Origin: Corallochytrium limacisporum Hawaii
Taxonomy: Eukaryota; Protista; Pluriformea
Direction of reading: 5' to 3'
NCBI GenBank assembly: GCA_002811645.1
Contig: PDIP01000008.1
Coordinates: 175,256 to 239,255 of the forward strand
Length of the DNA: 64,000 nucleotides
In this document: positions 246 to 15,272 of the stretch, piece by piece
Position numbering within the stretch: position 1 is the stretch's first letter
How the letters are laid out: each line of letters starts with the position of its first letter
Notes under the pieces: model-generated
Told to the model about the DNA's origin: nothing
Database searches by the model: none
The model's input: the letters and a program-made list of their open reading frames with translations, nothing else
Position numbers and translations under genes: made by a program

Positions 246-2310
246 TATTTAATAATGAGCAGATGTCCAGCAGCGCGCTGTGGATGTCTTAGTGGCAGTA
301 CAATGATACCTCACCACCTGTGCGATCGCTGACCTTGCTTGTTTGACAGGTTCGGGAATGTGCCACGATCACCTTTCACACACCGTGGCAAGAAAACGAA
401 TCCCCCCTTCAAATGAAATACATAATATATTGGACTACTCGATATGGCAGTCCCCCCCCCCCAGCGCAGAATATATATGATGTTGGAAAAAAACTTGTGG
501 AACACAGTGACTGGTACGTCTCGATTCGGCCACCGGGCACAGCCTGGACACATGTCTTTCGGCGGTCGCAATTACCAAAATATTCAATATACTTAATATG
601 AGTAAAGTTTTACGTCCAGGAATAGTGGCAGAAGGGCCATTGCCATCCTTCCGCACCAACAATGCGCACGCGCAGAATGCTATATACCGCATACCTAGGC
701 AACCGACGACTTTTATCGCAGTCCGTGGAACTGGCTCATAGAATAATATCTTGAACCAGCATACCAACTAGGAAGGTCTATTTCTGTATATACATAATGT
801 ACTTAAATTTAATAGTGGGGAGCGGTGGGGAGGGGGGTTGTTCGGCATCACCTGTCCTATGGTTTGCGGAGTGGGAAACCGACTGAGCACTGTCAACACC
901 GCTTTTCGCTGGGCAACGTTCCATGAAACAAATTTTCACGGACGGGAAAGGGGTTTTGCCTTGCAGTCTTTTGCAAGCCACATTAGGTATAGAGTACGAT
1001 TATGTTGATGAGGGAGAAGTGTGAGGATTAGGTGGCTGGCGGACAAATCGGGGAGCTGGACATGTGGGGCGATTTACATTTGTTGAGGTCAGCTGAAGGG
1101 GGGACTCCGGTTTGAGACGTGTCCAGGGCATAACTGGGGGTAAGGGTATAATTGATTGGGACACCACTCCCTTTAGATTGGCCTCATACATTAGGTACTA
1201 AAAATGGACGACCATAGCCACATCAATGCCAGGGCAAGATAGCGGTTGGCACGGAACACTAGCTCCGCCGAAGGCTATCGTCTGCTGCGCTGCGAGTATT
1301 GCTAGTTATCCACAGCTTCGAAAGATTAACAAGTAAGATCACAAATCACAGGCTTTGTGGGGCAGAGTGTTTGCATAAGTCCCAGACCCGTGGCCGCCAG
1401 TGGGAGCGCAACCATTTTAGACTTCATAAGCAGTGCTCGCATGCAACATGCGACAGCCATTTCATGCAGAGACGGCGGTGCTCCGTCCGTAACGATGGCA
1501 CGGGAAATGGCAATGCGATATTAATTCTTGCCGGTAGGGGAATCGGAATGGAGGGGACAAAAAAGAGGGGTGTAAACAGCGCGCCAGAGCACGCGGCTCG
1601 CGAGATCCAACTCATCCTCCTCGCACCATATTTACACAAAGCTACGCACGCCCAGAGAACACTTGGGAACGATATGAACGGAGGTTTCGGTGAAGTTTTC
1701 CAGAGTGATCTATCTGTTTGCAAGGCTGGAGCTTTATAATGCTTCGCAAAATACCGACGATGCGGATGTGGTAGAGTTCCGATAGGTTGGGGACCGCCAG
1801 TTCGCAAATTGTCTGGCCCCTCTTATCAGAGACGCTTCACCGGGTAGGAAATTGAACTTTTTGTTTCATTCCGGCACGAAACAATCTGAGTCTCTTGGTG
1901 AATAGATTTGCGCCGCACCTCAACGCAGGACGTTGGACGGACGAAGGAGACGGGAGAAGAGAAGGAGAAAAAAAAAGAGGGGGGGGGGGAAGGAGAGGGG
2001 GGAAGAGGGAGAGCGGGGAGTCCTTGTTTGAATCGCTGCGTTCCTCCGCCGGGTTTTCATTTGATTCGTTCTACCTCATTTTGCCACCAATTTAGTATCA
2101 AAATTGGTGGGCAAGTATGATTGATTAATTGGGCGACGAGGCATTGTCGACCTTTCTCACCATCTTTGCACGCTCATGCGAAAACCACAAAGCAAAGCTA
2201 CAACGGAGTAGGTACTTATGTTGCGATGTCAATAGAGCGGAGAGTGTTCATTACTTGAAGCTTTTGTTCCATGGATCTGCAATATATGGTAGCCTAACAC
2301 ATCGTTCAAA

Positions 2311-4506
2311 ATGAGGAACATTTTCTCCGTGTTCTGTATGATCTACGTCGCCTTGGCCTCCCTGGCCAGCGCGATAAAGGTTGACTACAGGTGTGCTGTC
2401 ATCAAGCCTTACTCTTGGGGGTACTATAAAGAACATTGGCGTTTCTTTCACCGCCCCGACAGTGAGATTCAGATTTGGAGCGCCAGTTTCGCAGGTGTTC
2501 CACACAGAGTCTACACCGACTTGTCTGTCCGCGACTGGGAAATAGCGAATGACCACGGAAGGTACAGCTGCATTCTCATGGAGACTACTGACCTTTCAGC
2601 CGGTGATGTGCAGTATATCTTGGATTACGCCAGGAAGTACGGTGCCCGGATTCTGTTAATTGGCGCTCAGGTCGGTAACGTTTTTGAAAACGGTGGTGTG
2701 CAGGGTACCAATTGTGAACTCGGTAGCACTGCTGTCCCCACGAGGGCAGGTCTGGATCTCAACGGCCATAACTTGATGGACCCAGATACCGAATTGTCCT
2801 TGCAAGGCTTCTGGAACTGTGGTGTCAGACTGACTATGGCCAAGAACATCCCTTACCTAGTTGACGCCGACGATCCCAGCTTGGTGTACGCTTACCATCA
2901 CGATTGGAATGGTGCCGAAATTCTGCTGTCCACCGTTCCCGCCCCCATCTGGTTGGACGATGCTAATGCCTACGCCACATATCTCATGGATTTCGTTTTT
3001 GACGGGTTCTATTATGGTGTTCGAGACTTTTCGCGGTACCTTGATACCATGAACGTAGAGAAACTTTGTCACGTTTGGCCTGAGCCCCTTGGCCTCTGGT
3101 ACGATAATGGAAAATACCAAGACCTGAAAGATTACTTGATTGCTGGGAAGCTGAAATTCCCCCCGTCACAGTGCGAAGACACTCTGGATGCGAGAGCTGA
3201 ACGCCGAATTTGGGAACGTGATGAGCTCCAAATGACTGCTGACCTGACTATGGACAAGCCTTGCCCTCGTTGTAGTCCCACATCATTGGAGCTGAACGCT
3301 GCTCGTGCTTCCGCCGAATTGAGCTACCCCATCACAGGTCTCCCTGACCTTGCCCGTTCCTTCCCAAACAGTCGCACTGGCAAATGTGGAACCACCTGGG
3401 TGAGAGTGGCTGCTGGTGCAACAGTGAAAACTGGTGACCCGGAAGACCCCACTGACCCAGAAGACCCCACAGACCCCGGACAGCCAGAACCACCATGCGA
3501 GTACAATCACTACACCCATTCGCACGAGGGCGGCGAATGCTACTGGGATAAAAGCAGGAGTGACTGTGCCCAGTGCAGGAATGGCGGTTGCGCATGTGGC
3601 GAACACAAGCGTGGCGTTTGCGTTCAATGTGGTACTAATCAGTGTGACGCTGTTGAAGAGTGCCGTCCCGGGGACGGTGGCTCCGATCCCACTACTCAAC
3701 CAGAGCCAACAACAACGGAGACAAGTGAACCGGAACCGGAACCCACCAACACCGAACAGCCAGAACCACCGTGCGAGTACAATCACTACACCCATTCGCA
3801 CGACGGTGGCGAATGCTACTGGGATAAAAGCAGGAGTGACTGTGCCCAGTGCAGGAATGGCGGGTGCGCATGTGGCGAACACAAGCGTGGCGTTTGCGTT
3901 CAATGTGGTACTAATCAGTGTGACGCTGTTGAAGAGTGCCGTCCCGGGGACGGTGGCTCCGATCCCACTACTCAACCAGAGCCAACAACAACGGAGACAA
4001 GTGAACCGGAACCGGAACCCACCAACACCGAACAGCCAGAACCACCGTGCGAGTACAATCACTACACCCATTCGCACGACGGTGGCGAATGCTACTGGGA
4101 TAAAAGCAGGAGTGACTGTGCCCAGTGCAGGAATGGCGGGTGCGCATGTGGCGAACACAAGCGTGGCGTTTGCGTTCAATGTGGTACTAATCAGTGTGAC
4201 GCTGTTGAAGAGTGCCGTCCCGGGGACGGTGGTGGCGCGGACAGTGGCTCCGAGACCACCAGTGAAGCCCCGGAGCCCACCAGTGAAGCCCCTGAGCCCA
4301 CCAGCGATACCGGTACCGATGAGTCGTGCTCGCTAAACCAGTACACGGCAGCGTCACATGGTGCTAGATGCTGGTTCGACCCTAGCAGAAGTGACTGTGC
4401 TAGGTGCCATAACGGTGGTTGCGGCTGTGGTCGGACTAATCCTCACGTTTGCGTCCTGTGCCATCATGGTCATCATTGTGACCACGAGATCGCCTGTGTT
4501 CAGTAG
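2311..4506 (+). CDS. Secreted protein, paralog A: conserved ~370-aa region (Agd3/CBM87-like by recalled motifs), acidic P/T/E linkers and four 10-Cys modules
   Basis: 731-aa ORF with an N-terminal signal peptide (MRNIFSVFCMIYVALASLASA). Shares motifs with 10167-11492 and 13476-14918: QIWxxSFA, HGxYSCIL, YAxKYGAR, GxRDxSRYxxTMNxE, VWPxPLGLWxxNGKY, KCG. Product is inferred. Confidence 0.9.
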   Translation: MRNIFSVFCMIYVALASLASAIKVDYRCAVIKPYSWGYYKEHWRFFHRPDSEIQIWSASFAGVPHRVYTDLSVRDWEIANDHGRYSCILMETTDLSAGDVQYILDYARKYGARILLIGAQVGNVFENGGVQGTNCELGSTAVPTRAGLDLNGHNLMDPDTELSLQGFWNCGVRLTMAKNIPYLVDADDPSLVYAYHHDWNGAEILLSTVPAPIWLDDANAYATYLMDFVFDGFYYGVRDFSRYLDTMNVEKLCHVWPEPLGLWYDNGKYQDLKDYLIAGKLKFPPSQCEDTLDARAERRIWERDELQMTADLTMDKPCPRCSPTSLELNAARASAELSYPITGLPDLARSFPNSRTGKCGTTWVRVAAGATVKTGDPEDPTDPEDPTDPGQPEPPCEYNHYTHSHEGGECYWDKSRSDCAQCRNGGCACGEHKRGVCVQCGTNQCDAVEECRPGDGGSDPTTQPEPTTTETSEPEPEPTNTEQPEPPCEYNHYTHSHDGGECYWDKSRSDCAQCRNGGCACGEHKRGVCVQCGTNQCDAVEECRPGDGGSDPTTQPEPTTTETSEPEPEPTNTEQPEPPCEYNHYTHSHDGGECYWDKSRSDCAQCRNGGCACGEHKRGVCVQCGTNQCDAVEECRPGDGGGADSGSETTSEAPEPTSEAPEPTSDTGTDESCSLNQYTAASHGARCWFDPSRSDCARCHNGGCGCGRTNPHVCVLCHHGHHCDHEIACVQ
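3481..4232 (+). repeat. Intragenic tandem repeat, 276-bp (92-aa) unit, ~2.7 copies
   Basis: Units start at 3481, 3757 and 4033 (cagccagaaccacc). Copy 1 differs from copy 2 at ~4 positions; copies 2 and 3 look identical. Unit = one Cys module plus a P/T/E linker. Confidence 0.95.
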
Positions 4507-5234
4507 GTTGCTCAAAGGCTAGGAAATATATCAAATAAAGGCGTTCTATCATATTCCATTGCTACAGGGCATGAAATTTTTGCAAATCAATACTCGCGCG
4601 CTCCACATCCGTTACCTTCGAGCAATGCACCAGGTCCCGATATTTTCTGCAGCGCTGGCTCTGGACTGTCTAAGGGAATGCCACAAGGTATGTGGAACTG
4701 ACTTGCCACCGTGCCCCTCCTCCGGATCTTGGCCCTGCTCACATATAACTTGCATGTACACGCACAAGTGCACTGGTAAAGCAGCGTACATGCTTGCGGA
4801 AAGTAAGCGACACTGCAGAAGGCAAAAGGTAAATAAGGGGAGCGCACAGAAGAATGAGGCGGTGGCAACGTGAGGCCGGTCGAATCCTTTCTAACCATTC
4901 CCTCATTGATTCGATGTTTGCGTCGATATCCTGAACACTCACCATGCTTTTTCTCTGATACTCTGCTCGGTAGGCAAGGGGAGGTGAGTTGGCAACTGCG
5001 GGTTTTATGCGCTACGTCTATTGCTACCAGCTGGGACGTTGTCCACTTTACCCACCGTCCTCATGCCTAAACGGACAGTGGCGGTCACTAACATCAAGAC
5101 CACCCCTATTTTGGGTATGGTTGATAAACGTCGTAGCGGGCGGACTTCACGGTTTCCAAACTACGGCAACGGTCTCGTGTGATAAAATAGGCCCCGAATA
5201 CATATCTGCCAATGACTCCTTTTTCATGATCTGG

Positions 5235-5394
5235 TCGCTCTCTGTGATTGTGCATCGCCCTCTGTCATTATACATCGCTCTCTGTCATTATACATCGCTC
5301 TCTGTCATTGTACATCGCTCTCTGTCATTATACATCGCTCTCTGTCATTATACGTCGCTCTCTCTGACTATACATCGCTGTCTGTGAATATACG
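5235..5394. repeat. Minisatellite, 20-bp unit TACATCGCTCTCTGTCATTA, ~8 copies with degenerate ends
   Basis: Directly visible period-20 array with no spacers, so not CRISPR. Confidence 0.95.
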
Positions 5395-8300
5395 ATTTAA
5401 GGGTGACGGAACGGAACGGACAGTCTTCGCGGTCAGGTTAGCTCCGTTCCACCCTTCGATAGAGAGGCTTTTCAGGTTCTATGGGCTCGAGTTCTTCCGC
5501 GGAATGCGGGTGGGGGGTGGGTGGGTGGGGAACCTACGTGAGCCTGCGGGGTATTAAATTCACCAGTCACAATTTCGCAGGGTACATTGAGTACCAAAGT
5601 GCAAGAACTGTTGAAGGAAAAGAATGCGGTGATGTAACAACTTTTTCTAACCCACATCTTTGATTGGTCCAGCGTGTTGAACGGTTTTGAGGTTTGGCAG
5701 ATAAGAGCCAGGACAACGTCGCACGTTAGGGATAGGCATACACGTTTGATATGATTCTTCGGGATGGCCATGGACCCAATGCAGCGACCTCCACCTGCAA
5801 CGAGAGCCACTCAAAATTCAGGCGACAGCGACGCATACATAATGTACCAAGTGGAGGGATCCTTCCAATATCACCTTTCGAAACTTGCCTTTCAACCCCC
5901 TATAAGTACTACTATTTCAAAGCACACAGTGACCGTTCAGCAGAGCACAAAAAACTCACTAAGAGGCGTCAGCATACGAAGCGGCTAGGTGAGGGTGTGT
6001 AGTGCTTGTTGCAATGACACATCGCTTTGTATTCTGGTCCCTTTTCCTAAACTGGAAATCTAGGGCTTCTGTTCCTCAATAAGGAAAATGTTTACCTCGC
6101 TTTGACGGCAGGTGGTGCCTAATTGTTAGCGCTTGCTAACGAACCCAGTGTACGGCTGGTGGTGGGCCCTACCCCACACTCCCGGATCAGTGAGTTCCCT
6201 ACCAATGGGGAGTCCCATAGTTGGGGCGAGATTCTGAAGAAACAGGTTCGACCAAGGGTCCACATTGACAGCATTCTGAGTCAATTTATGTGATTCTGTC
6301 TGTCGAGTACGTGAGTTTTCGTGCCCTGCAGTCCCAGAGTGTCATGTGAGCTCGTCATCTCCACACGGAAACAAATTGACACCTCGCAAACATATTGGCT
6401 CCGTGATGTCACATCGCACACATCGCGAAAAGAATAACTTCTATGACATCAAAAAGCTCGCGATACGGGTTCCTATCGGTTCCCGGAAGCCTGAGTTTCG
6501 GCACAGCGCACCCCCCGTTGTATTGCACCACAAATTCTGTAGATGCGCTACCACCGACTTGTTTCTACACAGAGATGTCTATGAAACGTAGAGCGAACGG
6601 GTTATAAGAGTTCTAGATGTCCGCGGACACACACAGCATACTCACTATTTGGAAGCAGGAAGCAGGAAGCAGATTGTGAAGCAGAGATGGATAAGACCCA
6701 GCAGGGTGTCAAAACATCTCAGACGCATTCGTTGCCGGGAGTACCTTTCTGGAGTGCAGACAAAAATAGTGCCGGGCCCCCAGTCCTCAGCAAGGGATAA
6801 AATTTCACCTCTTGGACCTTTGCAAAAACCTGCCAGCGCAAAAAAGGGGATGGCCACTACCTTTCGGGGCCAAAAATTTACTCAGAGTGGGCCTATTGAT
6901 ATTAACAGGAGATACGCTGAAGTTTTCGAAGCTGGACTGTCGAGAATTTCCTATCTGTCCGCCTGTCCGTGAAGTAAGTTCATAATGGATAGTTCATTAA
7001 CACTGGTGATGCTTTTCCACCGATTGGTCCCTCGCCCCCCGTCGGTAGTAAGTGAACCGTTGATACTCGTACATTTTTTTTCCGCTAATGAAAGCAGTCG
7101 ACTTAGTCTGCGTGCGGTAATTACTTTTAGCCGCGAAACAACCGCCCTCTTTGCGCTGCGATCGATTGGCGAGCGCCTACCTTCCCTCCCTCCCCCTTCC
7201 TTTCCTCTCCTCTCTCGACATCGAACACTTCCCTCCTCGCCCTGTATGGTACACCGTACAGCAGAAACTGGGCATCAGGATCGTGGAGTACGCACGGGTA
7301 TGGTATTCACTGGAGCCCAAAAAGGGACCGGATGTGCACGGAGAGGCGTACTCGGCAGACCCGAAGGGGGAACGAGAGAGTAGTACGTTGGGAAAAAAAA
7401 ACGTAAAGCAAAATGGCCTTATTCACTCGGTAACTCTACATAATTCGAATTTCGTACATTCAGAATGTTTCGACGGCGATTCTGGCATTCGTGGGCCGGT
7501 GATTAGAACCGGAGTGGGAATAATGCTAGTTGCCTTTTTTGAGACGGGTCGGCAATGTGCCCCCTTTCGGCCGGGCGGGGGAACACATGGTCGGAGAGTT
7601 GGCACAACCAAACTTACATTTCTCGCAGCGATAGACTGACAGAGAGGTTTCTGGTGTACTATAGCAAAGTGCTGGAGAGTTTATTAGGATGACGGGCACT
7701 GTTAATGTCTCTACTCCCTCCCTCTCTCCAGTGGGGACCAAAAAAAAGTCCTTTCGGTAGCCACGGTGGTCTCAGACAGGAGCTTTTTGGGTAAGGTCAC
7801 ACAGCACTGGGCCAGCATCCCCCCCGTGGCCTGTCTTAAGACTCTCCCACTGGGGACCAAGAATTGAGAGAATACTCGCAGTGTAATTACGGAACAACTC
7901 AGTGCCCAAGGATTTGTGCGGGATGGGATGCAAAATTACATCATCGACAGGGTCAGACCCTGCTCCCATTCTTGGGCCACATTGGACAGCTGGGGGACAT
8001 TACCGAAAAGCCGCTAAGACTTCCCTACACTCCCCTCCTTTCCCCGTGCCCCACGGTTTGGTCCTTTCCATATGTCCAGTGTGTTTGTAGTATTTAGTGG
8101 GCTGTCGAAAAGGACCGATACCGTCGCGCGCACCACAAAATTGACTGCTTCTACTATCTGCACAGTACAAAGGCAAAAGAGTGGAGGTATCGTCCCAAAC
8201 GGAAACGGAAAAGGGGGGGGCCGCGGTGAAGTGCTTGAAAATCGATATGAATCGAGTCAGACGTAATTCATTTTGTACCCAATTGGCAGGGATGGTGGGC

Positions 8301-10166
8301 GGCCCGGCCCACCCGGTGAATTGTCGTCTGCGACCATGACCTGTGGGCTGAAACGGGCACACATCACTAGCAAAAGAGGCATCCAAAGAGGGACGGGGTA
8401 GAGCAAGTGTCTGCAGTTGGTTCATGTGCAAATAATAAGGAGTAGACCATTTAAACACAACCGGGCTATCGCTTCGTCAGCCATCACTGAATGGGTGTGA
8501 GGTGTGTGTTCGTTGCGGAAAGGAGCATCGATTTGTTGGTAGTGGTGATGATGTATTTCCAGCGGACGATGGCCCGCCCCGGGGGNNNNNNNNNNNNNNN
8601 NNNNNNNNNNNNNNNNNNNNNNNNNNNNNNNGGGGGGGGGGGGAGGGAGGGAGTGGATCGAAGGATTGTTTTAATAACTGGTGCATCGGGCAGCCTCTTA
8701 TTATCTCTATAGTTGTTTCTACCGTCTTGATAATCGAGGTCTTGCAAGGCACCTGTCTCGCGTGCATTAAAGACAAATTTTTTTCTATTCACCCCCCTCC
8801 CCCCCACATGCACACTTACGCGAAGGAACTTTTTTGAAGAGGTTCTCAAGGGGGGCCCGCTCCAACGCGCCCACTCCTACTCCATCGGGAGATGGTTGTT
8901 ACCAGAAAAACTTGTCGAATGAAGCACAGACCGAAGGATTTGTTTGGCTTTGCCATCTCTTCGGGTCGGACAAAAAACGTGGTGGTGGCTGAAAGTCTTC
9001 TCTTCATCTCGCCCGTCGCGCCCCTTAGGCTTGAAACCAAGGTCACTATTCCCTTTGACGATCGGGAACGAAGTTAAAAAAAATACCTTGCCATTACCGA
9101 GAAACTGGCGATGAGAGAACAGTCAACTCCAAGCGCGAGTGGAGATCTTGTTTGTCCTCTCGCGGTACATTACTGCGTGCGATTTGGGCGACGAAAGCGG
9201 TTCGCTGACGCGCATGATTTCCATAATCTCGCAATACAAACTTTTGTCCATGATGAATTGGGCGCTCGCCAAATGATCCGCCGGTCTTATCAATTGGAAA
9301 AGCTTCATTGCTGAGCTGGCGTGGTGGTTGGACAGGGGTTCCCGGGGAGGAGGTACGACTTGAACATATGAAGTAGTGTCCAAACCTTGGTGGGCAAGCA
9401 ACTGGGTAGATGCGGGAGGTTTGGAGGGGTGCAATCCCATCCCTGAAGACGGATTTTTCTATTTTGTGTTTTGCTTCCGTCCTCCTTGACTTTGACAGCT
9501 TTTTAACGCGCCCTGGAGATTCGGATAGTTTGTATGTCATGAGGGAGGAAGAAAACGCAAGTGAGGTGCTGTTGTGCGAACGCATGGTCGAGTGGCTTTC
9601 ACAGAGACAAAAAATGTGACCCGGCGGAGAGAGGAGGGGTGGGGGGGGAAGAGGAGGGGGGAAAGGTGCTTCGGGCAAAAGATACCCCGGGAGAGAGGTG
9701 GAAGCCCAAAAGAGAGCCGTGGAGAAAAGTTTTCTTTTTTTTGTTCTTTTTTTACCCCTCAGGTGATAAACATGAGGCACTTTGGGTAAAGGGCTGAGCA
9801 CTTGGAAAAAAAAGAGAGGGGAGGAAACGAGGATGACCCCCGGAGTGGGGGGGAAGAGGCGGTTTACCTGCAAAGGCATCCGTGTTCTGTTGAAGTGCCG
9901 GAGGAGCTTTGAATAGGACGTGAAAGAGATGTGAGCATGATGCAGTAAGGATATTCAAATCCTTGGAGGCCTCCATTAAAAGCCGCTCACGTCCTGTAAA
10001 GACCCAATTCGGGTGAAGGACTGTGTAATATCTCCGGGTAAGCTTCGGAATCACCTCAGCTATTTGAATGGTAGTCGCCTGGACAATCAAGTCTTATCAG
10101 GAACTCATTCGACCATTATAGGGATCTGCTGTATCCGTGACCTCGAGAGAATCCAAATCTTCAATT

Positions 10167-11492
10167 ATGAAGACTTCGTTCCTTTCATTTCTTGTAAGCG
10201 GCCTGTTGGCCCTCGCTGTGGAGGTAAATGCGTTAAGGGTTTTCACAGACCAAAGGTGCCTTCACATTAAAGGCAAGACTTGGTTTTGGTACGACAACCG
10301 AGAGTGCCGCTATTCGCATGAGCCCAATAGTGAAATGCAAATCTGGCAAGCGTCTTTTGCAGGCATGCCCCTTGATATTCTTGCTATGGGCGATGACGGT
10401 AGTTGCATCAGCAACCCGGATTATCCTAAAAGTGACGTCCTGAGCATTCAAACTTTCTCTGATGCAGACTGGGTGGTGTTCGAGGACGAGCACTGGCGCC
10501 ATGGTAAGTACTCCTGCATTCTCATTGATGCAACTTGGACTCTTTCCGACGAAGAGTATAACTACACTCTGAAATACGCCCAAAGGTATGGTGCACCCGT
10601 TTTCGTCCTTGGCGCACAACGTGGTACAGACTCTGGTAACCAGTGGGAGAACGGCGGTGTTTCGAGGGGTGCGTCGTTCAGCAGCGGCGCCGCCTACAAT
10701 GGAGTACCCACTCAGGAAGGTATGGCTGAGTGTAAGAACACTATGCTGTCCGCTAACGCCCAAATTAATCTGGCCGGCGTGTATGGTGAGTACGTGCACG
10801 TGACGGGCGCAGGGAACACACCATTCTTCACTGACCGGGACGATCCCAGCAAGGTGTTCGCCTACTACCACAACAATGGTGGTGCTGACATCCTTATTTC
10901 CTATCTTTCTGCTCCCCTCTGGACGGAGGCAGGTAGTGCCTACGCCACCTACCTCATGGATTGGGTATTCCGAGGTAACTACTTCGGTCGCCGAGACTAC
11001 AGCCGCTACTTGGAGACAATGAACACGGAGGTCCTGGCCAACGTTTGGCCTCAGCCTCTCGGTCTGTGGTTCGGCAACGGCAAGTACGGTGGCCTGAGCG
11101 TGCCCAAAATTCTCGCCTGGTTCGATAACCCTCCTATGAACTGTGGCGACGATAGCTTGGCCAAACGTGCTGACCGTAGAAACATGCACACTGTTACAGT
11201 TCCACCACATCAGCAAGTGAACTACAATGACCAGGATGCACAACTGATCTTCCACATGCCGTGCCAGGGTTGCGAAGCAGACAACATGATCTTCTACTCA
11301 AGTCGGACTGACGAGTATCCCATCACTGCCAGCAAAGACATGATCGACCAGGTGGTGAAGCGTTTTCCGAACATCCAACGTATCACCAAGTGTGGCTCTG
11401 AGTGGACTGCATGGGTCACCGCCACTCATCTCGAGAAAGGGGAAACGTACAATAATCCCCCTAAAGAAGTGCCCGTCACCACTGTAGCATGA
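10167..11492 (+). CDS. Secreted protein, paralog B (same family, no Cys-rich module)
   Basis: The first ATG (10167) gives signal peptide MKTSFLSFLVSGLLALAVEVNA; the track start at 10137 is a GTG. Shares all family motifs and ends shortly after WVTATHLEKG. Confidence 0.9.
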   Translation: MKTSFLSFLVSGLLALAVEVNALRVFTDQRCLHIKGKTWFWYDNRECRYSHEPNSEMQIWQASFAGMPLDILAMGDDGSCISNPDYPKSDVLSIQTFSDADWVVFEDEHWRHGKYSCILIDATWTLSDEEYNYTLKYAQRYGAPVFVLGAQRGTDSGNQWENGGVSRGASFSSGAAYNGVPTQEGMAECKNTMLSANAQINLAGVYGEYVHVTGAGNTPFFTDRDDPSKVFAYYHNNGGADILISYLSAPLWTEAGSAYATYLMDWVFRGNYFGRRDYSRYLETMNTEVLANVWPQPLGLWFGNGKYGGLSVPKILAWFDNPPMNCGDDSLAKRADRRNMHTVTVPPHQQVNYNDQDAQLIFHMPCQGCEADNMIFYSSRTDEYPITASKDMIDQVVKRFPNIQRITKCGSEWTAWVTATHLEKGETYNNPPKEVPVTTVA

Positions 11493-13475
11493 ATGATTTA
11501 CAAACATGGCTGGACCATATTCACATGATCTATATAATGGAGAAAACTTAATTGTAGCTGAGACAGCTGGTATGTCTCATGTACTAGTATATAATATTGT
11601 AAGAAGACTGGATCTTCCACGAGAATTAAAACAAGTACCTTCAATTATTCTAACATGGTCCCAAACTCAGCTTTCGTATGGCAATGCCTAAGAGTGTTTA
11701 CTTACTTTGTATATAATATTGTAAGAAGACTGGATCTTCGTTTACTTACTTTGACCCATGTCAAGCTCATGGAAGGGAAAGATGATCATCTTGCTTTCCG
11801 GAATTTCACCGGGTTTGTTCCTTTTGCTTAGAGGTCCACAGCTCCCGCATGCGACGACCGGGCCGCACTCTAGTGGCACACGAGCTGTTGATCAACATGG
11901 CAGATGCGTATCTCTGGAAGCGTTCGTGCAGATTGACTCCCTAGCGTCCACACGCTTTGACTTGCAGGGAGTGACACCACAGTAAAGCAAGGATGAGATT
12001 CGCGAGCCCAAGTCTATTTCTCCCTTACTTGCTCAAATTCCTTCCCCCTCCGTGCCCACGGTCTTCCGCGGCGCTTCACCAACTACCTGGCTGCCGATCC
12101 CTACGTATAACATAATTGGTACATTTGATATGGAAAAGTGGAAGGAAAATGTTTCAACCGCAAGGACGATCGGACGTGCGCTCTCCCAGTCCTTCGAAAC
12201 ATTCTCCCCGGGCGGTGTCAACCCCCCCTTTTCCCCAGACGTCGTATCCGTAAATTTCTAAAGCAAATTGCACGCGAAAACGGTTGCATTTCTAACCAGT
12301 TGGTGGTGGTGTGTAAGAACGGAATCATTTCTTCCCGTCGGTTTCCGGTACATTACAACCTGGAATTGACTCTCGTGTCTGGGAAAATCCCGGGAGTGCA
12401 ATCACTAGCTAGTGGTGGGATCGATGAAACCGCCCTCTGCTTTTCATCGGTAACCAGCCGTTGTGTATACATTTTTAACCAAATCTGCGCCCCAGGTGAC
12501 GGAACGGCGAAGAAAAGGCAGGGTTAGGTGAAAATGAAATAAAGACCCAAGAAGGCAGCGGGCTGGGGCACGCCGTTGTTTGGGGGAGAGGAGACCCCGG
12601 CGGAAAGGGGGGGGAAGGGAGGACAAGACTTGGAGCCTCCTCGGCACGGGGAGGGCGAAAGGGACGGGTCAGAAAATTGCAAGAAGAGAAAAAAAAAAAA
12701 AACAAAATTAGAGAAAGGGAAAAGAAATGAATAAAAGGGGCAAAAAAAAAAGGGGATCCGGCTCGGCTTGGGAGTGGTCAGGGTGCGCCCAGAACAAAGG
12801 CGAAACGTGGTGCATAATCGTTTTCCAAGCAATTCCAATACTGGTACCACCACGCAATGTCCAGTAATTACCAGATGAAAGAAACTCTGGTATGAAGCGG
12901 ACGTTGGTTGGGGAATGAAGCGGCGATGGTAGTGAAGAACCCGGGGCTGTGGGAGGGGAAAGGGGGAGGAGGGACGAACGCACGCGATGGTTGCAAAGAG
13001 CCGGTCCCCGCCTTCCAAAGAGGGGGGGGACGTGCACGCGACTGGGTGTAATGAGCCGGCCTCTCCCCCCCTCTGGACCCAACATAAAACGGTGACCAAA
13101 CGGAAAATTTTCTTTTTAATCGGCTACTGAGCGGTGGGGAACTTTCAGTAGGGATTCCACTGATACTGCTACCATGTTACGATGATACAATGGCTCCTGT
13201 CTGAATTCCTGATAGGTCCATACCAAAGGGGTACATGCGCGGCACCTTTCAGGAAGGGAGGCACCACCTGGTTCTGTGGACTGGTGATTTGAGTCCAGGA
13301 GGCTGTTGGGAACTGAAGCCAACTGGTCGGTCGGAACGGTTGTGTGGGACTGACGAGTCCCACTGGGTAGATTGTCGGCAGCTATTTAAGACATGTTCTC
13401 ATGATGAAATAGTCGGGCCATCGGCACGCCCAGCAATACACTGTAGATCAAACCGGGCAACACGGTTTCATCAAG

Positions 13476-14918
13476 ATGATGAAGAAACTTGTTTCTAGTA
13501 CTTTTGCCAGCCTGATGGCCCTTGCCGCTTTGCAGGTCAACGCGGAAAGAGTCTTTGTCGACTCAAAATGTATTGTCGTCAAGGACTACACTTGGGGCAC
13601 CTACGAAGGCCAGGAGCGCTTCTTCCACGAACCCAACACCGAAATGGAGATCTGGCAGACGTCTTTCGCAAACATGCCAGTTGAGGTTATGGGCATTCCT
13701 AACGTAGTCGACTGGGAATGGGAAGTCTTTAACGACGATGAGTGGCACCACGGTAAGTTCTCCTGCATCCTCATGTGGCTGTATGACAGTAACACACTCA
13801 CTGATGATCAGGTGACTTACATCAAGAACTACGCCAAGAAGTACGGCGCCCGTATCCTCTATTTGGATGCGTACTACGGCAACCCTTTCGAGGGTGAAGG
13901 TATTATCTACCCTAAAAACGAAGACAGCCCTTATCTTGGCTCACATGGAGTCCCGACTTCGGATGGTATGAAACTGAACAAGCTTAATCTGTTGGATCCC
14001 ACGAAAAAGATTCCCCTTGACGGATTCTATGGCGGTGCAGTCCAATTGAACAGCACTGTCAGCGGAAACATTCCTTACCTGGTTGATTCCGAACAACCGG
14101 ATCAAGTATATGCCTACTACCACGAGACGGATGGTGTTCAGACCCTGATTTCCTACATTCCTTCCCCCATCTGGGAAGAGGGCGGTAACATTTACGGTAC
14201 CTACCTCATCGACTTTGTCCTCAACGGTCTGTACTTTGGTCGCCGCGACTACAGCCGCTATATGGAGACAATGAACACGGAAAACTTGCCCAATGTCTGG
14301 CCCGAACCGCTTGGGCTTTGGTACAGCAACGGTAAGTACGGTGACTTGAACGTGACCAGTATCATTTCCTACCTCAAGGACCCTCCACTGTTCTGCGAAG
14401 ATGATAGCCTCGACAATCGTGCCAAACGCCGCCTCTGGGAACCCTACTTCGCCAACAACACTGCCCAATTGATTCAGGATAAGCCATGCGCCACTTGCGA
14501 CCCTGACAACTTCATTTTCTATTCCAGCAAGACCTTGTCGTACCCCATCTCTGGCACGGAGGAATACGTCGTCGACGTCGCCACTCGCTTCCCCAACGCC
14601 TCAGAAGTTATCAAGTGTGGACAGGAGTACACTACGTGGGTCACCGCCACTCACCTTGAGAAGGGCCAAACTGAAGGCCATGCCATGCCCAATCCTCCCC
14701 TTCCAGTGAAAGTCCAGAACCCCGGTGATTGCTCGCTCAATGAGTACACCAAGTCGGCCACTGGTGGATCCTGCTACTGGGAAAAAGACCCGAGTAACAA
14801 CTGTGCAGTCTGCGAAGACAACGGCTGCGCATGTGGTGCAGAGAACCCTCATCTCTGCCTCGAGTGCGGCGCAGCGAATTGCAACTCTGCTGTGGCCTGC
14901 GTGCCCACGAAATCCTAA
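13476..14918 (+). CDS. Secreted protein, paralog C (same family, one C-terminal 10-Cys module)
   Basis: 480 aa with signal peptide MMKKLVSSTFASLMALAALQVNA. Shares GRRDYSRYxETMNTE and WVTATHLEKG with paralog B. Cys module at 14730-14900. Confidence 0.92.
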   Translation: MMKKLVSSTFASLMALAALQVNAERVFVDSKCIVVKDYTWGTYEGQERFFHEPNTEMEIWQTSFANMPVEVMGIPNVVDWEWEVFNDDEWHHGKFSCILMWLYDSNTLTDDQVTYIKNYAKKYGARILYLDAYYGNPFEGEGIIYPKNEDSPYLGSHGVPTSDGMKLNKLNLLDPTKKIPLDGFYGGAVQLNSTVSGNIPYLVDSEQPDQVYAYYHETDGVQTLISYIPSPIWEEGGNIYGTYLIDFVLNGLYFGRRDYSRYMETMNTENLPNVWPEPLGLWYSNGKYGDLNVTSIISYLKDPPLFCEDDSLDNRAKRRLWEPYFANNTAQLIQDKPCATCDPDNFIFYSSKTLSYPISGTEEYVVDVATRFPNASEVIKCGQEYTTWVTATHLEKGQTEGHAMPNPPLPVKVQNPGDCSLNEYTKSATGGSCYWEKDPSNNCAVCEDNGCACGAENPHLCLECGAANCNSAVACVPTKS

Positions 14919-15272
14919 ATGACAGCAGGTCTGTCATCGAGCATATATTAACAGTGAAGCCCTCACTGATTTTTCTTTTGTCTAGTTTCGTTATTCTGGA
15001 CCCGCAGTGAGACGGCTGGTCGGTCTCACCAACATCACACATGTAAAATATGAACTACATAGTTTTTCAAACCAAAATATTAAAGGCCTCGAGAATTCCG
15101 CTGCACAATACAATGGTAACAATCACAGACGAACACCCAAAACAAAATCACCTTTTACCATACGTGTAAACCACCATAGAACATTAGACAAACATTTTGG
15201 CACTGACTCGCTGCACGGACTTCTGCATACGGCAATAAACATGGTTTAATTACACAGAGGAATGAAATGGTT

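Follow-up and report, generated by a model that had tools for sequence, protein, structure and literature searches.

Three tandem genes of the protist Corallochytrium limacisporum Hawaii very probably encode derivatives of Agd3 that lack the catalytic carbohydrate esterase (CE) barrel of this enzyme. They occupy positions 2311 to 14918 of the window, the 64,000-nucleotide stretch of DNA analysed here, which lies on contig C275 of a 24.1-Mb genome in 286 contigs. In each of the three proteins, hereafter the trio, a CBM87-like domain would be followed by a short junction, standing in place of the CE18 barrel, and by a C-terminal beta-sandwich. The reading that we favour goes one step further: the trio proteins would be secreted, non-catalytic Agd3 derivatives that bind the polymer that their enzyme relatives modify. 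With the binding function included, we regard this reading as probable, with a clear margin for error.

Agd3 and CBM87 are known from fungal and bacterial biofilms, where they mature galactosaminogalactan (GAG) or Pel-type polymers for adhesion and virulence (PMC7229062). In Agd3, the CBM87 domain (residues 141-364) precedes the CE domain (365-733) and a C-terminal sandwich (733-806), whose seventh strand is provided by residues 146-149 (PMC7229062). A CE18 domain was recognized here as a distorted (beta/alpha)7 barrel of about 370 residues carrying a QxDD motif (D377/D378 in Agd3) and a pair of histidines. Literature searches on Corallochytrium with Agd3 and on CBM87 returned no prior description of CBM87 proteins devoid of an esterase domain.

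Three intact genes encoding predicted secreted proteins

The three open reading frames (ORFs), at 2311-4506 (gene 1, 731 aa), 10167-11492 (gene 2, P0002, 441 aa) and 13476-14918 (gene 3, P0001, 480 aa, stop codon at 14916-14918), are all on the + strand, intact, intronless and free of internal stops. For gene 2, the ORF opens at 10137 or 10167, and the length given is counted from the MKTSF start. In alignments, the three share 40-51% identity over a common core of about 345-420 aa. Each protein opens with a hydrophobic signal-peptide-like segment (2311-2376, 10167-10235 and, by inspection, 13476-13544, all + strand). No further Kyte-Doolittle window above 1.6, and neither a transmembrane (TM) segment nor a glycosylphosphatidylinositol (GPI)-type tail, was found in the trio. 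On inspection, the trio proteins appear to be secreted and soluble. A previous reading made from the sequence only had described three co-oriented paralogs with signal peptides and without TM or GPI tail, and the ORFs and hydropathy agree with it.

A divergent CBM87 domain at the N-terminus

Profile-profile comparison identifies the first ~230 residues of the trio proteins as a divergent CBM87 domain (2377-3027 in gene 1 and 10236-10997 in gene 2, + strand). In gene 3, this alpha/beta/alpha domain covers 13545-14249 on the same strand, that is core residues 1-235 ending at GRRDY, as delimited by hhalign, a weak Pfam match and structure. Aligned with hhalign on five full-length Agd3 proteins of the same genome, the trio matched with a probability of 96.6% (E 6.3e-10), trio residues 3-230 lying on 22-246. 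This alignment corresponds to the entire CBM87 domain, from its first strand to the G.RR motif that precedes QIDD. When the four further paralogs devoid of CE domain described below were added, the seven CE-less proteins matched 16 full-length proteins with a probability of 98.4% (E 6.7e-15). One of these paralogs, P0003, is linked to the trio at E 1.6e-12 and exceeds the Pfam cutoff for CBM87 by itself, with 30.4 bits.

The trio does not reach this cutoff, the gathering threshold of CBM87_Agd3 (PF25116) being 27.6 bits. Protein 3 alone matches, below threshold, with 14.9 bits (E 0.022, residues 92-139, precisely the segment pointed out by the sequence-only reading), and proteins 1 and 2 give no match. 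The profile check proposed by the sequence-only reading is consequently divided: profile-profile comparison (96.6-98.4%, E 6e-10 to 7e-15) carries the CBM87 assignment, but Pfam leaves the whole trio under its cutoff. Other sequence searches were silent. A phmmer search of the Protein Data Bank (PDB) sequences with protein 3 returned nothing relevant, with a chance match to a neutral protease at E 0.028; the trio profile had no relevant match in the same sequences; and a word-indexed homolog search with protein 3 returned this protein itself alone.

The motifs common to the trio and Agd3 are the N-terminal strand, YSC, (K/Q)YGAR and the G.RR that ends the CBM. The Agd3 strings that the sequence-only reading had cited, LTTDQWNQLYAYQLEYGVRMV, DGREQMAFFI, WITWLTRGLYAGHRR, QIDD, WVETIVQEFVRLVDWP and LARYQR, are all present in the sequence of the Agd3 crystal structure, 6NWZ. 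In Agd3, W292 and W344 are the aromatic residues in contact with the ligand (PMC7229062). Their equivalents were traced through two chained sequence alignments, from the trio to a homolog of the same genome and from there to the 6NWZ sequence. Along this path, W344 would correspond to the invariant W of the trio motif P(I/L)W, an aromatic position in 7/7 CE-less proteins, and W292 would map near G(F/V)(Y/W), in a loosely aligned loop, at a position held by Y or W in 6/7. In gene 3, these motifs read PIW (W344 equivalent) and GFYG (near W292).

The barrel is replaced by a short junction

No match to the Pfam model of the Agd3 esterase domain (Agd3_CE, PF25115) was found in the trio at E<=1. Between G.RR and the helix leading into the beta-sandwich, the trio has about 61-75 residues vs. 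the ~370 of the barrel. In gene 3, about 61 residues (14250-14432, + strand, low model confidence) stand in this place; the junction together with the C-terminal helix and beta-sandwich covers 3028-3420 in gene 1 and, with the C-terminal domain, 10998-11459 in gene 2 (both + strand). In the register of QIDD, the trio reads ETMN, DD being replaced by MN, and the other CE-less paralogs have TN, TN, WN and IW. Neither a conserved histidine nor a DD was found in the trio junction. With MN in place of DD and without the metal-binding histidines, the trio is not expected to act as a deacetylase.

The motif G(R/V)RD(Y/F)SRY begins at nt 3016, 10986 and 14238, in accord with the junction positions of the sequence-only reading (~3010, ~10980 and ~14232). 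That reading had also taken YxETMNTExLxxVWP for the last CE helix, WVETIVQEFVRLVDWP (6NWZ residues 691-706), joined to the CBM within about 5 residues. This part found no support: for the trio, the helix placement was outside the top ranks of a sliding profile scan and did not emerge from the noise. Along its default path, hhalign continues without gap from the CBM, placing GRRDYSRYMETMN on GSRLININTQIDD with a confidence falling to ~0.3 at the end. This continuation puts ETMN on QIDD, and the excision would therefore not be a clean join within 5 residues. With the G.RR anchor included, the sliding scan over the wider family gave the in-register placement on QIDD the first rank among 723 offsets (z 4.7-5.7); once the anchor was left out, nothing rose above noise (top z 3-4). 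In another collinear alignment, which is non-significant, SYLKDPP…EDDSLDxRAxRR falls on the closing part of the last CE helix and on the helix after it (EFLNLP…KHDDIAEIFRQR), so that a 33-residue insertion is unnecessary.

As the sequence-only reading had noticed, the junction is among the best conserved stretches of the trio, and the sole repeat detectable at the DNA level between the paralogs (10860-11159 vs. 14112-14411, 71%) spans it. One may ask whether these ~65 conserved residues are a newly evolved binding or catalytic element, for which the Agd3-derived domains would be a mere scaffold. Among the paralogs, no other stretch is as well conserved in DNA and protein, and the junction has no confident structure prediction and no significant match to Agd3 beyond its first few residues. 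A new site of this kind is nonetheless improbable. In the trio, the junction shows none of the conserved His, Asp-Asp or Cys patterns that usually mark metal or catalytic sites; its strong conservation among the three proteins turns poor across the seven-member family; and its conservation could reflect packing between the flanking domains.

Predicted structure compared with Agd3

A template-free AlphaFold2 model was calculated from the seven-sequence alignment; its mean predicted local distance difference test (pLDDT) score is 62.5 and its predicted template modelling score (pTM) 0.69. By region, pLDDT is mostly 70-89 in the N-domain, 65-76 in the C-terminal beta module (residues 306-370), and <50 in the junction (233-305). 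Foldseek against the PDB returned 6NWZ as top match (E 1.8e-10), followed by NDST1 and proteins of the GATase1 fold. Among 48,161 chains compared with VIA-align, 6NWZ came first with Z 25.2 (275 residues, root mean square deviation 2.9 Å, model 2-371 on chain 142-794), the runner-up having Z 12.6. The structural alignments bypass chain residues ~365-722, which are the CE18 barrel, and the alignment with 6NWZ ends at residue 794, within the Agd3 C-terminal domain. Of the 275 aligned residues, no more than 224 can belong to CBM87, so at least about 50 lie beyond it. The match to both terminal domains with a gap over the barrel, which the sequence-only reading had predicted, is therefore borne out by the whole model. 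With moderate confidence, the trio model has the Agd3 N- and C-terminal domains in the same relative arrangement, the barrel being omitted.

The second-best structural match is human NDST1 (9F6Z), a heparan sulfate N-deacetylase/N-sulfotransferase, with Z 12.6. The resemblance of CBM87 to GATase1-type and NDST folds was reported in the Agd3 paper (PMC7229062). GATase1/ThuA-like proteins and the NDST1 N-terminal domain share the alpha/beta/alpha fold with the trio (Z 10-12.6); however, they reach half of the Z of Agd3 and have no matching C-terminal domain. No Cys-His-Glu triad of the GATase type is evident in the trio, on an inspection that did not go into detail. A search for the NDST esterase domain (HSNSD-CE, PF12062) gave no match in the genome, its control being uninformative. 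One ESM Atlas cluster mixes Agd3_CE and HSNSD-CE annotations. In this atlas, the models closest to that of the trio belong without exception to full-length Agd3-type proteins with three domains (650-709 aa, bacteria and Ascomycota); their alignments span query 1-384 with 320-336 residues, at TM scores by query of 0.67-0.70, and no CE-less cluster was found among them.

The C-terminal part is the less certain half of the comparison. In gene 3, a helix and a beta-sandwich (14433-14678, + strand) superpose on Agd3 residues 723-799, that is on the C-terminal domain, according to VIA-align, a weak collinear hhalign alignment and a common last strand. This strand, visible by eye, reads G.EYTTWV in the trio and EG.YTWI in the full-length proteins. 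The C-module folded alone has a pLDDT of 55 (70-82 in its beta part); among the 48,161 chains its rank-1 match is again 6NWZ (residues 723-799, 72 residues aligned), at a Z of 3.9 that ties with many unrelated glycosidase beta-sandwiches and that therefore counts only alongside the match of the whole model. Foldseek with the C-module alone found nothing at E<=0.001. With hhalign, the trio C-module did not match the five full-length proteins (probability 0.08%). Restricted to the C-terminal region and with deeper alignments, it gave E 0.004-0.006 vs. 0.16-0.24 for the reversed null; against whole proteins, it stayed at null level. The Pfam model of the domain (Agd3_C, PF25117) matches neither the trio nor anything else in the genome and is too narrow to decide, because it also misses all of the genome's own full-length Agd3 proteins, of which there are at least 18. 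The earlier claim that the C-terminal part matches the Agd3 C-terminus is thus supported by the whole-model structure but hardly by sequence (E 0.004-0.1 vs. 0.1-0.3 for the reversed null). With moderate confidence, the homology of the C-module to the Agd3 C-terminal domain is a matter of the model and not of sequence alone.

Taken domain by domain, Agd3 is the best structural match of the trio by a wide margin, and the two share the CBM87 fold and, in the model, the C-terminal beta-sandwich, together with a putative aromatic equivalent of W344. In contrast to Agd3, the trio proteins are devoid of the ~370-residue CE18 (beta/alpha)7 barrel, of DD and of the metal-binding histidines, have about 15% identity to the enzyme, and bear tail modules with ten cysteines (10-Cys modules) that Agd3 does not have.

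A family of seven CE-less proteins

A whole-genome profile search located only three copies of the family on C275, the trio. With four members on other contigs, the genome has seven CE-less proteins of this kind. The others are P0003 (C249), P0004 (C250), L021 (positions 1890-4889, C250) and L005 (positions 1393-3123, C231). The trio that the sequence-only reading had put forward as the family is therefore real as a tandem set on the contig, but it is part of a wider group. The four other members share with the trio a layout of CBM87-like domain, junction and C-module. Unlike the trio, which is soluble, in tandem and forms a tight clade, they have TM or GPI-like tails, and their C-modules are 17-32% identical to those of the trio.

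Two proteins deserve separate mention. L021 encodes 1000 aa, in which the CE-less N-domain and C-module are combined with a TM segment and with three TSP1 repeats of the spondin type; to judge by its predicted domains, it is an animal-style adhesion domain set on a sugar-binding scaffold. In L022 (positions 1953-3164, C174), a protein of 404 aa, a CBM87 domain above threshold (E 2e-16) is joined to a TM segment and a stalk rich in Pro, without CE or C-module, and this predicted layout is that of a second, separate CE-less architecture.

In an unrooted tree of the CBM87 domains, the seven CE-less proteins lie on one side of a single branch (support 88/95). The trio clade is supported at 100/99, and the CE-less group sits among full-length clades. 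This topology is consistent with a single loss of the CE domain, which would have preceded both the triplication and the split from the four other CE-less paralogs. The deletion had already been placed before the triplication by the sequence-only reading, and the tree moves it further back.

Searched exhaustively with HMMER, 1.84 billion representative proteins yielded four matches only, all from this genome. At that library size, a divergence such as that of L005 and L021 falls below significance, and the result therefore means only that there are no close relatives elsewhere. An exact-sequence contig look-up of P0002 had nothing on record.

Expression and variation of gene 2

Gene 2 is transcribed, according to contigs from sequencing runs, of which X1 and X2 are of RNA origin by a guess in the run records; their contigs are transcript-sized. 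From run X1, a 1647-nt contig of depth 1103 is identical to 10186-11586 plus 11709-11954; it follows gene 2 collinearly through the junction, and its coding part is uninterrupted. The corresponding contig of run X2 (1450 nt) has the same structure and 27 differences, so it derives from another strain. A third run, X3, a 2025 marine metatranscriptome, contains 359 nt of gene 2. Run X1 includes 64% of the sampled words of 10000-15000 whereas its contig covers about one third of this stretch, and gene 3 may therefore be present in X1 as well.

Between the two strains, 26 coding sites of gene 2 differ (10167-11489). Nineteen of the 24 codons touched change the amino acid, and the ratio of nonsynonymous to synonymous rates (dN/dS) is near 1. 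All 18 replacements in the core (18/18) fall outside the 114 columns that are invariant in the trio (P 0.0016). The fold core is accordingly constrained while variable positions, presumably at the surface, change fast.

These data also bear on the possibility that the ORFs are misassembled or are decaying pseudogenes of full-length Agd3, the barrel having been lost to an assembly error or to a missed intron or exon. An assembly gap does lie inside the span, and the genome is in 286 contigs. This gap (8586-8631, unstranded) sits in a poly-G tract with G-runs on both sides, in the spacer between genes 1 and 2 and outside all ORFs of the family. Because it is 4080 nt past the stop of gene 1 and 1536 nt before the start of gene 2, no family ORF spans it. 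The three ORFs are open from end to end, the contig of run X1 is collinear across the gene 2 junction and the second strain is alike, seven paralogs on four contigs have the CE-less layout, and replacements between strains avoid the invariant columns. We find such an artefact hardly credible.

The X1 contig lacks 122 nt (window 11586-11709) downstream of the gene 2 stop, between 31-nt direct repeats. An intron was considered and rejected for this skip: the GT..AG ends are missing (the ends are GT..TT) and the 31-nt direct repeats flank it. It looks more like a length variant mediated by the repeats.

Enzymes and accessory modules in the genome

An Agd3_CE domain above threshold is encoded by at least 18 open frames of the genome, many of them in tandem arrays, such as those on C7 (21-32 kb), C50 (110-127 kb), C178 (413-425 kb), C240 (19-26 kb) and others; in addition, there are six GH114 (Ega3-type) genes above threshold. 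Predicted from their domains, these CE18 and GH114 genes are a large expansion of enzymes modifying polymers of the GAG/Pel type, and a GAG/Pel-like polymer would be their substrate in the organism. The sequence-only reading had suggested looking for the partners of Agd3. Full-length Agd3 and Ega3 homologs were indeed found, but Sph3 (Spherulin4/GH135) had no match in a search whose control was uninformative, and no search for the synthase was made.

The full-length Agd3-type proteins, with CBM87 and Agd3_CE, are 802-871 aa long. Such proteins, for example L016 (positions 1908-4313), L027 (2256-4694) and L030 (2290-4848), have the same secreted layout as the trio, with a CBM87 domain and with 10-Cys modules after the C-domain. 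They differ from the trio by an intact Agd3_CE with QxDD, for which Pfam gives E 1e-28 to 1e-67.

The 10-Cys module is 59 aa long and has at least 44 copies in the genome. Protein 1 carries four, separated by Pro/Thr/Glu linkers (3496-3672, 3772-3948, 4048-4224 and 4327-4503, + strand), protein 3 has a single one (14730-14906, + strand) and gene 2 has none. According to a local hidden Markov model, at least eight full-length Agd3 proteins with QxDD have the module immediately behind the C-terminal domain. Apart from the missing barrel, the trio is therefore laid out like the full-length proteins of this genome. Other carriers of the module are GH114 enzymes, a purple-acid-phosphatase-like protein and several proteins without Pfam match; copies are found, for example, in L028 (2627-6016), L044 (1525-2856) and L041 (1038-2639). 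It has no match in Pfam and no usable one in an ESM Atlas feature search. Judging from this distribution, it is probably a general extracellular accessory, enriched in the CE18/GH114 set without being exclusive to it, and it is a candidate for a new extracellular binding or anchoring module.

Proposed origin and function

The following scenario would account for the trio. The ancestral full-length gene would have encoded a signal peptide, a CBM87 domain, a CE18 barrel, a C-terminal beta-sandwich and 10-Cys modules. Nearly the whole barrel would have been lost once, about 65 residues being left in place, and the flanking N and C domains could have stayed folded together without it. The CE-less gene would then have diversified into seven paralogs, a secreted tandem trio and four membrane-anchored proteins. 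The trio would bind, and not modify, a GAG/Pel-like polymer rich in alpha-1,4-linked N-acetylgalactosamine or galactosamine (GalNAc/GalN), on which the CE18 and GH114 enzymes work, and would serve as lectin-like components of a matrix, of a wall or of adhesion. We infer sugar binding, the identity of the ligand and the biological role by analogy with Agd3.

Several points weigh against this proposal. Function is assigned to the CBM87 domain by homology, at about 15% sequence identity to Agd3, and the Pfam score of the domain is sub-threshold, in one protein. The W292 equivalence hangs on a loosely aligned loop. The model is moderate, built from 7 sequences, and falls below 50 in pLDDT at the junction; the structural match of the isolated C-module is shared with unrelated sandwiches, and in sequence this module scores at the level of the null or close to it. 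The junction, the best conserved part of the trio, could carry a function of its own. The CBM87 tree is unrooted, and transcript evidence covers gene 2 only. Finally, Sph3 did not appear in a search with an uninformative control, and the 10-Cys module is not specific to the polymer, since it also sits on a phosphatase-like protein and on proteins without Pfam match.

The CE-less proteins might instead be pseudoenzyme regulators, which would compete for the polymer or shield it, or would pair with Agd3-type or GH114 enzymes and in this way set the pattern of deacetylation. The CBM87 domain of Agd3 steers the site of deacetylation (PMC7229062). The trio and the enzymes have domains and a tail module in common, gene 2 lies in the very deep contig of run X1 (although depth says little about how strongly a gene is expressed), and between strains its variable positions change rapidly. 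However, the membrane-anchored paralogs with TSP1 repeats resemble adhesion or receptor proteins more than regulators. This explanation also overlaps with polymer binding by non-catalytic Agd3 derivatives, which it needs too, and adds a protein-protein contact that is hypothetical. We hold it to be unlikely, if somewhat less so than a new site in the junction.

A broader version of the proposal of polymer-binding, non-catalytic derivatives can be put forward with more hesitation. The CE-less proteins may be the first stand-alone CBM87 lectins, lineage-specific and born by excision of the barrel, whose secreted and membrane-anchored, TSP1-bearing forms would read or organize a GAG/Pel-like matrix; this is a tentative view, to which we give somewhat less than even chances. 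If it were true, a GAG/Pel-like polymer would count among the main surface constituents close to the animal root. Independently of this view, it may be worth asking how the Agd3 expansion of this holozoan relates to the origin of animal NDST. The ordinary reading is that of one more lineage-specific family of paralogs with domain loss.

If the trio binds the polymer, it would illustrate a natural conversion of an enzyme into a lectin by removal of an inserted catalytic domain, the flanking domains still being packed together, and could be used as it stands as a non-catalytic probe for GalNAc/GalN polymers. Considered alongside the at least 18 CE18 and six GH114 genes, it would also suggest a heavy investment in matrix by a close unicellular relative of animals. 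Such an investment would bear on the pre-animal evolution of extracellular matrices and of aminosugar-modifying enzymes, the fold resembling the N-terminal part of animal NDST.

Repeats in and around the genes

Gene 1 contains three tandem units of 276 nt (3463-4290), the later two 97% and 81% identical to the first, each made up of a linker and a 10-Cys module; this triple repeat is a recent intragenic expansion. In the spacer that follows the gene, 5215-5413 is an array of about 10 units of a 20-nt tandem repeat. Further downstream, a long G homopolymer and GGGA tract at 8575-8650 surrounds the assembly gap and is the likely cause of the break in sequencing.

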